Source: Ministeria vibrans ATCC 50519 (lineage: Eukaryota > Protista > Filasterea). From it: a DNA stretch of 64,000 nt. Every line of letters starts with the position of its first letter. Within the stretch, counting starts at the first letter, position 1. Below, piece after piece: positions 53,354 to 59,917 of this stretch. The notes beneath the pieces were generated by a model. It ran no database searches and was not told where the DNA came from. It saw nothing but the letters and a program-made list of their open reading frames with translations. The stretch is from NCBI GenBank assembly GCA_943704425.1, contig CALSCP010002431.1, forward strand, positions 129,347-193,346. The letters run 5' to 3'. Both the position numbers and the translations under genes were made by a program.

Positions 53354-53745
53354 TGGATGTTGGAGGAAGAAAAGAAATAAAAGTGAAAGGGGAGACTGGG
53401 GTCTGGGAGAGAGTCAGTCAGTCAGTCAGTAAGAGAGTCGACAGATCAGTCCAGGGAGTCCTGTAAGAATTCTGTACGCACAAAATGGCAATCTACATTG
53501 GGTACTGGTGCGTAGTGGCTGCTCAACTGGTCTGTCACTCGCGTGAGTTCCGTCAGAGGTTACTGTTACGGGACACACACGTTTGTACGTTCCGTTTCAA
53601 TCATTTGCCTTCGGCTGCAGACGATCACACACACACACACACACACACGCACACACACACACATCCAATCCTTGGAGGTGGACCCAAACATCCAAGTGCC
53701 ATGTAGTGGGGTGTCGCGCCATCAAATTGTGCAGGATGGGAAGCC

Positions 53746-53851
<106 letters not shown>

Positions 53852-54116
53852 CGCAGTTGGCGATCGGCGCACTCTTCACCGAACAACGTCACGCAAGTGA
53901 CATGAGTGACCGCGCACTCCTGAGTCCTGCCTGACAACTTATTAAGAACGTGACCGTGAACGATCAAACTGTCGTTTGTGGCCACGTATATAAAATATTT
54001 GGGTTGAGGAATTGCACAATAAGTTAAGACGAAACTCATCTTAAAACATTCCATTTTTAGTTTTCACAATTTTTTCTCTTCCTTCTTCTCTGATAACTCA
54101 TACACTCCAACTTATT

Positions 54117-57100
54117 ATGACGTCTTCCAACTTCACCGCTCTTGTTGTCATCCCCGCGACCACCGACGAGTCCGAACCGGACGCTTGGTCCGCTATACAG
54201 AGTTTGCGCGAACAGTTCGATGCGACAAAACATTACAAGAAATGGCCGCCCCACTTCACCATCGCGTCGCCCTTTGTGCCGCCCGAGTCAATCAAGACAG
54301 CCGCATCCATCCTGGCGCGCGCTGTTGCGCAAGTCGACGATTTCGAAGTGGTTATCAACGAACATGGTTTCTTCGACCATCGCGATTCACTCACGGCCTT
54401 TCTTCGAGACTCCACCTGCACCCCTCTTCTGGATCTGCACGCCACCGCGCGCGAGGCACTGATCCAGGCCAATCTACATGCACCACCGCAAGATTTTGTC
54501 CCGCACCTGACCGTGGTGCACCGGCGTGCCGTCGACCGTCCCACCGTCGCCGCCGCACTGCAAACGTTGCGCAATGTCCGCTTCAAGGTGCGCGCCCTTG
54601 TGGTCTTGAGCCGTCCCATGAACGCACCGGACGAGCCCATGTCAGTGCAGTATGTCATCCCCTTCCGCGGCGGCGGCGACGTGCGCCAGGTGCCGCCTGC
54701 GTCGCGTCATGGCGTGCCAGTCGGGTCGCCCGAGTACCACCGCGTCGACGCACTCTCCGCCGTCCTCCGCGACTACCCACCCCAGGACCAGTCCGGATCA
54801 GCAGCACAATTGCTGGCAGCAGGAAGAGGAGCCGGACTCACCATTGACGTTGCCGCAGCCGTCGCGGCCGCCGCAACTTCCAACGACACACAAGAGGATT
54901 TGCCCTCTCCCCAGGTACAACAATGTCTCACCTCTCCTCTTCTGCAATGCCAAACCTTCACCTCACCGATTCGTTCGTTTCCAGGTCACGTACACACTGG
55001 TGTTTCCCACAGTAGGACACGGTGGTACACGTCTGGCAACGGCTGCCGAGCTGCTCAGCCGCATCAAATGGGATTCGATGTACAAACGCATTATTAGTAT
55101 TAATTGTATTACGTTATACTGACATTAATTTAATTTTTGTAGGTTCTCACTCGAGGACTTTACGGTTGGATGGTACGACCGTGTAACCAACGAAATTGAC
55201 GAAGTGACTGCTGACCACTGGATTGGCACAGAACGAAGTAAAAAAATAAAAAAAAATAACAAACCGACACTCATTATTATTCTTTGTTTATCTCGCTTAT
55301 AGGCGATGTCACAAGCGAGGGATTTATCCCCGAACACCGCGTTCGTCAACTCAAGTACCGCGGTAAAATTGTATGGGACCGTGCAACGCGTCTTGACCTC
55401 ATCAGGTAAGTCCCCTTAGACAGTCACTTGTGTGATGGAATTGTTGTTTGTGTGCGTTCTCAATTCATTTCTATACGTAGCGGCGCACGTCTCGTCCCTA
55501 TTGCACGCGATGGAGTTGCACTTGTGGAGGGCGTCCTTCCCAACGAAGATCCATCTGAAGACACATCGACCACAACGACAACGACTGCAAATGCCAAGGC
55601 AACGCACTTTATTGGTCTTCGAGTGGCGGGCGTTGCCTCGCCGGAGCTCACGGAGCAGTTCACACACGCTCAGATGGCACTGGTTGAGGCACACGCCGAC
55701 GCGGCAGAAACCCTTGTGCCCTTACCTCTGCTGCATATGACCTTAGCATTGGTTCGTGTGACGCCAGGTAGTGCGGCTGAGCGTGCCACTGTGACGGCTG
55801 TGCGTGAGTTTGCAAGGTCACTGCCCGAATCACTCAACGTTGAGCTCAAGGGCGTCGATTGCTTTGCAAGCGGACGCTGTGTGTACGCGCGTGTTGCCAG
55901 TGGTGCTTCAATGGCACTGCTCAATGATGCGCACACGCGTCTACGCGAGTGCCTTGCCACCCACGGTGTTCGTATTGCAGACGCCTTTGAATTTGTTCCG
56001 CACGTCTCTCTCGCGCGTGTGCCTGCGAGTGTTGCCGGACAGATTCCTCGCGCGGCCGTTGACTCGATTGCGGCTCATCGTTTTGGCACGCTTACGACTC
56101 ATGCTGTCGATGTGACAGCCGTCGACGCTCCGCACCGCTCCGATGGCTATTACACCTGCGTCGAAACGGTTCCATTTGGCGTGCAACTACCCACATCGCT
56201 TGAGCTCCACGACGGTCGTGTCCTGGCCATCTTTGACTTTGACGGCACTCTTGTGCGCACACCGACTGTCGACTCAACGCGCTGGTCGCCCGCTGTCAAC
56301 GCCGCTCTGGGGCGACGCTGTATTGACGGTGGCCTTGGCTACTTTGAGACCAATGTGAGTCTTCGCGTCGCTCTGCAGTTGCTTCGAGCACCGCACAATG
56401 GACGCACATGTGAAGGTGTGCCTGTTCTTGTGGAACGTCTCGTCGAGGCATATCAGCGCGCCCGTCGCAACCCTTTGGCACGCGTTGTTCTGCTCACGGG
56501 CCGCACTGAGTCGTGTCGTGCCGACATGGAGGAGTTTATGCGCGAGGCCAATTTGCGCTTTGACGAGATTGTGATGCGTCCCAACCGATTCCGTGGACCC
56601 ACCGCCGTGTACAAGGCGCAGGAGGTGGTGCGTCTTGTGGACACGTACCATCCCATGGCTGTGTATGGCTACGACGACGACGAAAATTGTGTCCCGGCCA
56701 TGGAAAAGGCGCTCGAGGGCCGCGGTCTGGCTCACGTTGCCATCACCAAGGTGGTGCACAAGTCGGCGCGCGTTTCGGCCGACATGGAGTACGCCATGAT
56801 AGAGGAGGTGGTCCGTGCCCATCCTCGCTTGTCTCTCTCGCGTACGCCTCAGTTCACAGGCATTCTGCTTGACAGTGCGTCCCAGGCGCAGCTGCACAAG
56901 GTCTTCCCGGCACCCCAGTCCAACTGGAAAGTTCGCATGCACCACATCACACTGCACCAGGGCGCACCGCATGCTGAGCTTACGCTTGGCGAGCGTGTCT
57001 CTGTCAGGGTGACACGGTACGGTGCGTCTGCTTCGGCTGCTGCGGTTGCCGTGGAGCTTCCCGAACATCTTCAGCGCTTCTGTGCATCGCGCAAGCCTCA

Positions 57101-58676
57101 CGTCACAACAGCCGTGTCGCCTCACGGTGCCTCCAACGTCGACGTGTTGTCCATTCCCGACGACGACTGGACACCCATTGTCAACGAGCGACAGCAGCTC
57201 ACTCTGCGCGGTCACACTCAGCTGTTTGAGCGCTTCCTTGTCGCCGGTATTGACCATGCGGTGGGCCAGGGTGACGACAGCGCCAGCGACGACAGTGCGA
57301 GCGAACGACACGTTGACGCGCGCGGTCTCGAGACGGTTCGAGTGGCGGCTCTGACTCAAGGTGCAGGCGCTTTGGAACTCATGGAAGCAGTGTCGTGGAG
57401 TGCGTCGCTTAACGCTCGCACGAAACGTCAGTGTGCGGAGCAGACACGACTGCGCGAGAGTGCGCTGGACGAGATCCGTTGTCTAGCCGAGCTGGTCATA
57501 CCGGGCACCACGCTTCATCTTGTGGGCTCGTACCGTCTTGGCGTGCACTCGGCCGAGTCCGATCTTGACTGTGTTGCTGCTGTCCCTGCCACTGCGCCCA
57601 TTTCGACCGCATCCTTTCTGCGTGAGCTGGTCGATGTTGCGGCCAAGAGCCCTTCGGTGATGTCGCTGCGCTCGGTGCCTCATGCGCGAGTGCCCATTGC
57701 ATCAGCGAACATCTTTGGCATCAACGTGGACGTTCAGGTGGTGCGCGACGACGAGCCACAGAGCGACGGAATGCGCGCAGTCTCGGAGGTGGAGTACTTG
57801 CTGGCGAGCAGTGCGCTTGATCAGGAGGCGCGTCGCTTGCGTGACGCTTGGCGTCTGCTTCTAGTGATTGTAAAGCGATGGGCGAGCGCACGGGGTGTGT
57901 CACCCTGTCGCTTTGGCTTCCCCGGCGGTCATGGTTATGCGGTGCTGTGTCGTGCACTGGTGTTTGCACGCGCTCACGAAGGCGACTCCATTGCGCTTGT
58001 GGACCTTGTGCCTGCGTTCTTTGTCCGCTACGCTCACATGCCCTGGGCGACACGAAGCGTCTGTGGCGACGGCACGACATCTCCGCACGACGGCGCACAC
58101 CCCATGGTTATTGCGGCAACTCCCGAGTCGCTTGAGAGCGACGCAGTGGCAGGCAATGTGGCACGCTCGGCCACAGCGAGCAGTGTGACGGTGCTGGAAG
58201 CCGAGCTCAAGCGTGCCGCTGACATCCTGAATGTTGGTGCAACCAGCGGTGTTGCTGAGATGGTGACGCTTCTTGAGCGAGTGTGTCGACCATCAATACG
58301 CGAGTGGCAACGCACATTCCGTTCATTTGTGAGTGTGACAACGTGTGCATCCAACCCAGCGCTCCTCGAGACACTCGTGAGTGCCGTCGAGTCCCGTCTG
58401 ATTGGGCTTCAGCGCTCACTGGAGCGCGACCATCTTTGCTCCTTGGTCCGTGTCTACCCACATCATTACAACGAGCACCAGCCACCGTCGCAGTGCCCAC
58501 ATGCGGTGCGCCATGCCATTGGCTATTCGCTCGCCGAGGGACGCACTGCCGCCGCTGTCGAGACGGCTATTAACGACTTTCTGGCAAGCGTGCGCGCCAC
58601 TCCCGAGTTCTTGGGTGTGCCCTATGGCGAACGCGCCAGAGTCGATGCAAAGGTGGTCGTACAAGAGTGTGAATAA
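54117..58676 (+). CDS. Multidomain RNA end-processing protein: 2H + MJ1316 + 2H (AKAP7-like) + HAD + 2H + poly(A)-polymerase-like nucleotidyltransferase
   Basis: Exons 54117-54914, 54985-55079, 55143-55237, 55303-55405 and 55481-58676 total 4287 nt in frame (1428 aa). Motifs: HFT/HLT; LSRIKWD..GWYDR..IPEHRV..VWDR; HMT/HVS; DFDGT..LTGR..K..YDDD; HIT/HVT; GSYRLGVHSAESDLD..VDVQ. Confidence 0.88.
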
Positions 58677-58729
58677 AAGACATAATATTTTTGAGATTTC
58701 ATAATTTTTCCACTTATTTCTTAAATCAT

Positions 58730-59917
58730 CATGATAAAGTCGCTGTTGTTTGTCTTGCTTCAAACAGCAACGTGTTTTGCCTGGTCTGTGCGAGTTGTGA
58801 GGCAAGGAAGCGAGCCAGTGTTATCGGCACAAAACAGCGGAGCTTTAGGCTCCTCCGCTTTCCGTCAGACCTTCAATCCAAGCTATGTGGAGTCTTCAAT
58901 GGGGGTCTCTCCAGGTACTCTTGCTGTTCCGATGCGACCCACAGGTCTCAGTAATTATTTTTCCAGGAATACTCGCGCGAGTTCAAAACTGCACAAACGG
59001 TCGTGCGAATTGTCCGGGAACCACGAGTCCATCCGCGCTGGCATTCGCGCCGTTGGTCGCTGATTCGTTCCCGCCAACATTTTCGTCGCTTGTCGCGACT
59101 TCGGTGGTCTTTTCGCGGACGGGGGAGGCGGAGGAGGACGGCGTGGAAGATCCGCGCATGCTCCTCGTCAACGGCACCTACCACCTGATGTATACCGCGT
59201 TTGGGACGGTCGACGGAGTCAAGAGTCCACGCCTGTCGCACGCAATCACCACGACACCAACCGTAGCCGGTTCGTATCGGCGTCTCGGAGCGGTGCGTTG
59301 TGCTTGAGGCGACGTCGCTTTGGCTCACCCTTTGTTCTTGCAGGTCTTCCCCGGGTCACTCAATAGCAAAAGTGGAGCCCTTGTTCCCCGCTTGGCCACA
59401 CAGAACACACACTACCTCTTGTGGGGCGCAGGGACTATCACAGTGGCCACCAGTCCTGACATGCTCACGTGGACGAATCGCTCAACACTCCTGGAGCCGC
59501 GCGCAGACCACTTCGATTCAAAACTTGTCGAGAGTGGCCCACCGCCACTGCCCCTCAGCGACGGCAACCTCTTGTTCATCTACAATTCGGCCAACGAGAC
59601 GCTTGCCTACAACGTTGGCTGGGTCATTCTCAACGGAACAGGTATTGCTTGTCGTCGCCTCCCCCCACACTCCCCACTTTCATTTCTTTCCCTCTCTCTC
59701 TTCAGACCCATCACAGATCCTTCAACGCAGCTCAGTTCCTCTTCTTACGCCATCTCTTGGATGGGAACGCGGCACTGCACCTTTCCTATGCAACGTGCCC
59801 AACGTCATCTTTCTCGAGGCAGCGATTGCGCTGCCCGAGCGCACCGATACTTTTCGTGTGTACTATGGCGGCGCAGACGATGTCATTGGCGTTGCTGATC
59901 TCACTGTCACCATGTAA
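58730..59917 (+). CDS. Secreted glycoside hydrolase, GH130-like five-bladed beta-propeller
   Basis: Signal peptide MIKSLLFVLLQTATCFA; FNPS, GVEDPR, YHLMYTAF, SKSG, VESGPPP, VPNVIF, YYGGAD. Confidence 0.8.

Follow-up and report, generated by a model that had tools for sequence, protein, structure and literature searches.

A spliced gene of Ministeria vibrans encodes a reshuffled Swiss Army Knife protein predicted to heal and polyadenylate RNA 3' ends

The Swiss Army Knife proteins, a class of eukaryotic RNA-repair proteins, were reportedly described by Burroughs and Aravind in 2016. Many members of the class, but not all, contain an RNA ligase or a polynucleotide kinase. The HAD domain of T4 Pnkp removes 2'- and 3'-phosphates and heals RNA ending in a 2',3'-cyclic phosphate (RNA>p) to RNA-OH (PMC3592404), and the 2H enzyme ThpR converts RNA>p into a 2'-phosphate end (PMC4201822). 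RNA with a 3' phosphate cannot be polyadenylated before that phosphate has been taken off, which was shown for ANGEL2 followed by MTPAP (PMC9525292). The MJ1316 domain is fused to RNA-repair domains across eukaryotes and was predicted to recognise 2',3'-cyclic ends (PMC6514570, which refers to Burroughs and Aravind 2016). Here we describe a gene of the filasterean Ministeria vibrans ATCC 50519, located on the plus strand of contig CALSCP010002431.1 within a window of 64,000 nt (contig positions 129,347 to 193,346), to which all coordinates of the gene refer. Its protein contains, in this order, a LigT-like 2H domain, MJ1316, an AKAP7-like 2H domain, the HAD_SAK_1 phosphatase, a compact 2H domain and a poly(A) polymerase (PAP). 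Judged by sequence, structural models and analogy, it probably converts the 2',3'-cyclic phosphate 3' ends of RNA into polyadenylated ends.

The coding sequence consists of five exons with a total of 4287 nt, equal to 1428 codons followed by TAA, and the frame is open across all joints. All four introns are of the GT..AG type (Table 1). Two transcript contigs from the same study, X1 record 1 (4448 nt, starting at 54024) and X2 record 6 (4347 nt, starting at 54105), reach position 58701; both contain exactly the four predicted joints and continue into a poly(A) run after 58701. Contig X5, from an independent poly(A) RNA-seq study, has identical joints, and the DNA run X11 is unspliced and colinear with the genome. 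The 5' untranslated region (UTR) is 93 nt long and contains no ATG, position 54117 being the first start codon of the transcript, and the 3' UTR has only 25 nt. The next gene (GH130-like) has a separate transcript contig, which starts at 58739, with 37 nt between it and the poly(A) site. Because the transcript contigs carry the four joints and the poly(A) run while the transcript of the next gene is separate, the locus is one expressed nuclear gene with one spliced polyadenylated mRNA, encoding a protein of 1428 residues. A mechanical list of open reading frames (ORFs) breaks the locus up, and two or more adjacent genes could in principle have been falsely joined into one. Such an annotation artefact is hardly credible, however, given that two contigs run through the entire locus and show the four GT-AG joints exactly, with a single poly(A) tail, that the joints recur in a third contig from an independent study, and that the frame remains open through each of them. 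The first-pass annotation of this DNA had drawn the same four GT-AG introns and the same 1428-residue frame from the letters alone and proposed that the junctions be confirmed by RNA-seq. Its gene model proved exact in transcript contigs from two independent studies, all four junctions being present in X1, X2 and X5. The possibility of two separate genes, which it had named among the outcomes that would speak against it, is contradicted by the X1 and X2 contigs.

Domain searches with Pfam and other profiles were run exon by exon and not on the joined spliced protein. The N-terminal 2H domain is a clear match to Pfam 2_5_RNA_ligase2 and shares 33% identity (E 1e-16) with its N-terminal counterpart in a protein of the amoebozoan Pelomyxa schiedti that has the layout 2H-EEP-PAP-MJ1316. 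A PDB sequence search with exon 1 returned no meaningful match. The MJ1316 domain that follows is divided among exons 2, 3 and 4. These exons match a home-made profile, prepared from the MJ1316 domains of 12 relatives, in the correct order, with exon 4 covering positions 52-77 (E 6.7e-11) after the positions of exons 2 and 3 listed in Table 1. Exon 4 alone passes the Pfam cut-off (29.1 bits vs 26.3, E 1.6e-6). By these profile matches, the MJ1316 domain is reconstituted from three micro-exons, as the first-pass annotation had held. The micro-exons are of nearly equal length (95, 95 and 103 nt), and the introns between them have a GC content of 0.22-0.23, compared with ~0.6 in the large coding exons of the gene. 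Outside this region (54985-55405) and its flanking introns, the rest of the 4.3-kb coding sequence is intronless. The second 2H domain matches Pfam AKAP7_NLS. Among proteins of known structure, those nearest to it are subunits of kinetoplastid mitoribosomes annotated as AKAP7_NLS domain proteins (7aor_ar, 1.9e-11; 6hiv_DQ), and mammalian AKAP7 (5jj2, 1.9e-4) is more distant.

The HAD_SAK_1 domain scores well above its Pfam cut-off, and in a scan of the genome it reached 40.6 bits. This locus was the sole genome match for both HAD_SAK_1 and the MJ1316 part in exon 4. In alignment A1 (whose numbering is used here) the residues D13, D15, T17, T100, G101, R102, K139 and D160 are kept, in columns that are invariant or nearly so. 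The third 2H domain has no Pfam match and was recognised by fold and alignment; in A1 its residues H249/T251 and H301/T303 hardly vary. The HAD and third 2H domains were modelled as one segment with AlphaFold on the alignment of relatives (predicted local distance difference test, pLDDT, 89.6), and the model was compared in a full scan of PDB representatives. The HAD fold matched bacterial Pnkp1 (4xrp_A, Z 15.7), the T4 Pnkp phosphatase (5uj0_B, Z 15.7) and T4 PNK (1ltq, Z 14.9), and the HAD profile also matched Pnkp1 by sequence (0.006). According to the model, the fold is thus closest to the RNA-repair 3'-phosphatases Pnkp1 and T4 Pnkp, and a phosphatase role is predicted. Residues 211-345 of the model matched the catalytic domain of CNPase (2xmi_A) with Z 13.2 and a root-mean-square deviation of 2.9 over 132 residues, and the top Foldseek match of the segment was 6u05, a fungal Trl1 kinase structure (7.5e-8). 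The modelled third domain adopts a 2H fold and is CNPase-like.

Some 2H enzymes are 3'-5' exoribonucleases which end in >p, e.g. USB1. The protein could by this analogy be a remodeller of the 3' tails of particular non-coding RNAs, in which one or more 2H domains trim the end and leave >p, in the way known for USB1 and U6 snRNA, before the polymerase re-extends it. The presence of several 2H domains and a tailing enzyme in one chain would fit such a role. The conserved pairing of HAD with 2H, on the other hand, suggests phosphate removal and not trimming, and there is no Pfam match to the USB1 family, so that we regard tail remodelling as quite improbable.

The 3' part of exon 5 encodes the PAP. 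PAP_NTPase (1.6e-8, 35.1 bits vs a cut-off of 27) and MTPAP-like_central (1.9e-8) were detected by sequence, and PAP_central is weak (0.0048, 17.1 bits vs a cut-off of 27.1). In alignment A2 the columns of G82, D94 and D96 are invariant, and those of S83 and D150 hardly vary. Apart from three loops, the model of the C-terminal 464 residues is good. The model matched full-length yeast, human and bovine PAPs (2hhp, 4lt6, 1f5a, 1q78) with Foldseek E-values of 1e-19 to 1e-20 and template modelling (TM) scores of 0.65-0.71, with Cid1 and the terminal uridylyltransferases (TUTases) well behind at ~1e-11. The module as modelled is of the canonical three-domain PAP type and includes the RRM-like domain. 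Since a separate and better-scoring canonical PAP is found elsewhere in the genome, where PAP_central matches reach 76.7 and 49.4 bits, the PAP described here appears to be an extra copy.

PAP and OAS share the Pol-beta fold. This and the match of the second 2H domain to the AKAP7 type lead to a different kind of function, that of a signalling or immune-nucleotide enzyme: the 2H domains would have small molecules or 2',5' linkages as their targets (2',5'-oligoadenylates, ADP-ribose 1'',2''-cyclic phosphate, cyclic nucleotides) and the nucleotidyltransferase would serve to produce or lengthen nucleotide signals. The profile of the EEP domain found in relatives of the protein also matches the 2',5'-phosphodiesterase PDE12, which would agree with this. 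We nevertheless think it improbable. The RRM-like RNA-binding domain is kept, canonical PAPs match far better than other nucleotidyltransferases, the HAD domain is nearest to polynucleotide phosphatases, and MJ1316 is tied to RNA repair domains (PMC6514570).

Taken by sequence and model, all six domains are real and every catalytic motif is intact. Each of the three 2H domains has both HxT/S motifs (HFT/HLT, HMT/HVS and HIT/HVT). The stretches left unassigned are linkers of fewer than 80 residues, low-complexity or disordered. The Pfam scan by exon found no ligase, polynucleotide kinase or EEP (PF03372) domain at E-values up to 1. The list and order of domains given in the first-pass annotation, its view that the motifs are intact and its failure to recognise a ligase, kinase or EEP domain are all borne out, with every motif at its position and in columns that are invariant or nearly so. 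As for membership in the Swiss Army Knife class, HAD_SAK_1 (PF10307, a family whose name refers to the Swiss Army Knife RNA-repair proteins) is present above the gathering score together with multiple end-processing domains and MJ1316, and ligase and kinase are absent.

Table 1. Positions of the transcript, exons, introns, domains and catalytic motifs in the window
Feature	Position	Strand	Details
Whole mRNA	54024..58701	+	5' end of longest transcript contig to poly(A) addition site
Exon 1	54117..54914	+	798 nt, 266 codons; N-terminal 2H and low-complexity linker
Intron 1	54915..54984	+	70 nt, GTACAA..CAG; joint in X1, X2, X5, absent from DNA run X11
Exon 2	54985..55079	+	95 nt; start of MJ1316; profile positions 4-19, E 1.6e-5
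Intron 2	55080..55142	+	63 nt, GTACAA..TAG, GC 0.22
Exon 3	55143..55237	+	95 nt; middle of MJ1316; Pfam MJ1316 positions 18-41, E 0.084; own profile 23-44, E 5e-4
Intron 3	55238..55302	+	65 nt, GTAAAA..TAG, GC 0.23
Exon 4	55303..55405	+	103 nt; C-terminal part of MJ1316, conserved IPxHR...WDR motif
Intron 4	55406..55480	+	75 nt, GTAAGT..TAG
Exon 5	55481..58676	+	3196 nt including TAA stop
2H domain 1, LigT/ThpR-like	54174..54614	+	Pfam 2_5_RNA_ligase2 2e-25, aa 20-166
2H domain 1 motifs	54246-54266; 54498-54518	+	HFT; HLT
2H domain 2, AKAP7-like	55602..56177	+	Pfam AKAP7_NLS 4.5e-18
2H domain 2 motifs	55728-55748; 55995-56015	+	HMT; HVS
HAD_SAK_1 phosphatase (predicted)	56217..56822	+	Pfam HAD_SAK_1 8.1e-9, 36.0 bits vs cut-off 25.6
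HAD motifs	56232-56249; 56490-56504; 56604-56621; 56667-56684	+	I DFDGT; II LTGR; III Lys; IV DDD
2H domain 3, compact, CNPase/Trl1-CPD-like	56829..57233	+	Fold and alignment
2H domain 3 motifs	56937-56957; 57093-57113	+	HIT; HVT
PAP module: nucleotidyltransferase, central and RRM-like C-terminal domains	57420..58673	+	Pfam and Foldseek
PAP motifs	57519-57542; 57558-57575; 57720-57737	+	GS; DLD; third Asp

The similarity of the HAD domain to the T4 Pnkp and Pnkp1 3'-phosphatases and the canonical PAP fold agree with a protein that heals RNA ends and then tails them, as the first-pass annotation had proposed. It had given ribotoxin damage as one example of the origin of such ends, a link that is hypothetical, as is the activity on cyclic-phosphate ends. 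In the sequence of events that we propose, MJ1316 would dock on a cyclic-phosphate end, which one of the 2H domains would then open by hydrolysis to give a phosphomonoester. For this step the compact CNPase-like domain, which is always paired with HAD, is the likeliest candidate. The Pnkp-like HAD domain with its DxDxT motif would then strip the phosphate to leave a 2',3'-diol, and the canonical-type PAP would extend the healed 3'-OH. The LigT-like and AKAP7-like 2H domains probably broaden the range of ends or linkages handled. As the chain has no ligase, the expected outcome is tailing and not sealing, and the tail could either make the fragment more stable or target it for degradation.

The second of these fates is the basis of an alternative in which the protein serves in RNA surveillance or decay. 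After healing >p ends left by metal-independent endonucleases, it would add oligo(A) and hand the fragments to 3'-5' exonucleases in a TRAMP-like manner, with no rescue of the RNA. The lack of a ligase in the chain is compatible with this, and tailing after phosphate removal has been documented in trans (PMC9525292). The genome also contains a separate, intron-split RtcB ligase gene, at G000:C2497:39180-41473 (+); RtcB depends on the very phosphate that the M. vibrans protein is predicted to take away, which would put the two routes in competition. The polymerase, however, resembles the canonical three-domain PAPs rather than the decay-marking Trf4/Cid1 type (1e-20 vs 1e-11), and sequence gives no way to tell stabilising from destabilising tails. 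A role in surveillance or decay is considered unlikely, and the conversion of cyclic-phosphate ends into polyadenylated ends is retained as the preferred reading.

Relatives of the protein were sought in large sequence libraries. These libraries often call eukaryotic genes as prokaryote-style ORFs, and spliced orthologues may appear in them only as fragments. When exon 5 was compared exhaustively with 1.84 billion representatives by HMMER, there were 537 hits, among which only the gene's own fragment was below 1e-30. In a word-indexed search of proteins, exon 5 matched nothing but a 773-aa fragment of the gene itself. The query was cut into five segments and scored against 161 fetched proteins. 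Among these, HAD and the compact 2H domain occur together in 29 proteins, and the N-terminal type of 2H occurs with PAP in 20. Eight long proteins have HAD and the compact 2H domain in the reverse order. The combination HAD-2H-PAP was limited to the self fragment, and HMMER over the representatives revealed no second protein with both HAD_SAK_1 and PAP in the libraries searched. One protein, P0011, carries the block MJ1316-AKAP7 2H-HAD-2H. Two possible orthologue fragments were also found: P0004, which is 43% identical to residues 943-1060, and P0048 from Picozoa, which is 38% identical and spans the junction between the AKAP7 2H and HAD domains. A scan of metagenome contigs found no relatives, and the ESM Atlas yielded no more than one weak lead (score 0.80), which points to a cluster of bacterial proteins with 2H and PAP_central.

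A Pfam scan of 18 proteins with 2H and PAP detected EEP in 16 and MJ1316 in 15. Two layouts are common among them, MJ1316-EEP-2H-PAP and 2H-EEP-PAP-MJ1316, and two shorter proteins consist of 2H-PAP only. By profile, the EEP domain of these relatives (P0013, P0032, P0037 and others) is nearest to TDP2 (4e-25), with ANGEL2 at 1e-6. The TDP2-like character of this domain hints that the 2H-EEP-PAP-MJ1316 relatives may remove adducts other than simple phosphates.

Set against these relatives, the M. vibrans architecture looks like three known modules nested in each other: a 2H...PAP(+MJ1316) frame, the MJ1316-AKAP7 2H pair, and the HAD-2H pair in the slot of EEP. The simplest reading is a 2H...PAP frame with MJ1316 that holds an MJ1316-AKAP7 2H-HAD-2H block at the position taken by EEP in the relatives. 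The first-pass annotation had suggested that the combination may be undescribed. In agreement with this, the exact order of six domains was found nowhere else in the libraries searched; the architecture appears unique in everything searched, where full-length spliced eukaryotic proteins are poorly represented. The degree of novelty is lower than was claimed. A 2H domain, a phosphoesterase, PAP and MJ1316 recur in one chain in at least 15 of the 18 relatives with 2H and PAP, and other proteins have the HAD-2H pair by itself, or the MJ1316-AKAP7 2H-HAD-2H block by itself. In terms of its domains, the protein is therefore a reshuffled member of the Swiss Army Knife class with a new arrangement, and not a new kind of protein. 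A fuller proposal is offered tentatively, with somewhat more doubt than belief: that this is the first known HAD-type healing pair wired to a canonical-type PAP, together with an MJ1316 reader and two additional 2H domains from different subfamilies, that it accepts several blocked 3' ends (2',3'-cyclic, 2'-phosphate, 3'-phosphate and perhaps 2',5' linkages) and passes all of them to tailing, and that it arose in this lineage when one Swiss Army Knife protein was inserted into a second one.

Several points weigh against the proposed healing and tailing. The activity of the protein and the nucleotide preference of its polymerase are predictions from sequence and model, and the recognition of ends by MJ1316 is likewise a prediction. 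The scheme does not explain the need for three 2H domains from three subfamilies. To our knowledge, the Swiss Army Knife proteins are known from comparative genomics alone and no member has been assayed. An orthologue with the same architecture was not found in the libraries searched, and conservation lends the reading no support. The statement that HAD replaces EEP is positional only and does not imply functional equivalence, since the EEP domain in question is nearest to TDP2. It had also been considered that the PAP belongs with the 2H-linked PAPs, and this was dropped. In the PAP tree the query is on a long branch outside the canonical-looking clade, and the approximately unbiased (AU) test does not reject a placement within that clade (p 0.5).

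Some further features of the locus and genome were recorded. Transcript contig X1 record 1 opens with 23 T before position 54024, which could be an artefact of oligo-dT priming or else come from the poly(A) tail of a transcript of the minus strand with its end at this site. Directly upstream, long (CA)n and (GA)n microsatellites at 53600-53880 are read as pseudo-ORFs of the types THTH.., RERE.. and SLSL... Between the window and the public runs there are four single-base differences (55212 T>C, 56028 A>G, 56828 C>T and 58463 T>C). They are shared in varying combinations by X1, X2, X5 and X11, which resembles strain or allele variation. One other stand-alone ORF with a LigT-type 2H domain (107 bits) is present in the genome, at G000:C1010:14615-15067 (+).

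The gene is a clean test case for its class, being transcript-validated, with intact catalytic motifs and confident domain models. With no ligase in the chain, the predicted output should be simple to follow in vitro as a tail added to an end that had been blocked. The phosphoesterase slot of the 2H-x-PAP frame can apparently hold either EEP or the HAD-2H pair, which fits a fixed "syntax" with interchangeable parts. The protein defines no new category, and it bears on no long-standing question beyond the general function of Swiss Army Knife proteins.

The closest proteins in overall plan are the protist 2H-EEP-PAP-MJ1316 and MJ1316-EEP-2H-PAP proteins, which include KAH3767389.1 of Pelomyxa schiedti (P0038) as well as P0013, P0032, P0033, P0039, P0041, P0089 and P0130. 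KAH3767389.1 is named "RNA 2',3'-cyclic phosphodiesterase" in its source and has the layout 2H-EEP-PAP-MJ1316. Like the M. vibrans protein, these proteins combine a LigT-type 2H domain, PAP and MJ1316 in a single chain, and the identity of the PAP to that of P0013 is up to 31% over the shared tree columns. They differ in having a TDP2-like EEP domain where the query has AKAP7 2H, HAD_SAK_1 and the compact 2H domain. They contain one 2H domain and not three, and their MJ1316 is terminal, whereas in the query it follows the first 2H domain.

The middle of the chain has its counterparts in other Swiss Army Knife proteins. P0011 (700 aa) aligns with residues 41-495 of exon 5 in one stretch at 31% identity. 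It shares MJ1316, AKAP7 2H, HAD_SAK_1 and the compact 2H domain with the query, as do the proteins of ~1600 aa with the layout CCCH-MJ1316-AKAP7 2H-kinase-2H-HAD_SAK_1-R3H (P0021, P0045, P0101, P0104 and P0129). Both forms are without PAP and without the LigT-type N-terminal 2H domain, and the ~1600-aa forms additionally have a P-loop kinase, a CCCH finger and R3H, with 2H preceding HAD. In dozens of stand-alone proteins of 330-500 aa, such as EP01119_P001909 of the amoebozoan Soliformovum irregulare (P0003), HAD_SAK_1 and the compact 2H domain align with residues 245-570 of exon 5 as one unit at 23-27% identity, and locally at up to 31% in the case of P0002. The DxDxT, TGR, K and D of the HAD domain and both HxT motifs are kept, and the C-terminal domain has ~120 residues. 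These proteins represent the healing pair alone, without reader and without polymerase.

Among characterised systems, T4 Pnkp and the bacterial Pnkp1-Rnl-Hen1 provide the closest structural match to the HAD fold of the query (Z 15.7), including its DxDxT motif. In these systems the phosphatase is paired with a 5' kinase and a ligase and the RNA is sealed, whereas the query has neither partner and ends in a polymerase. ANGEL2 and MTPAP of animal mitochondria are two separate organellar proteins without 2H or MJ1316, and the phosphatase is of the EEP and not the HAD type, but the logic is the same as that proposed here: the terminal phosphate is removed before poly(A) is added.

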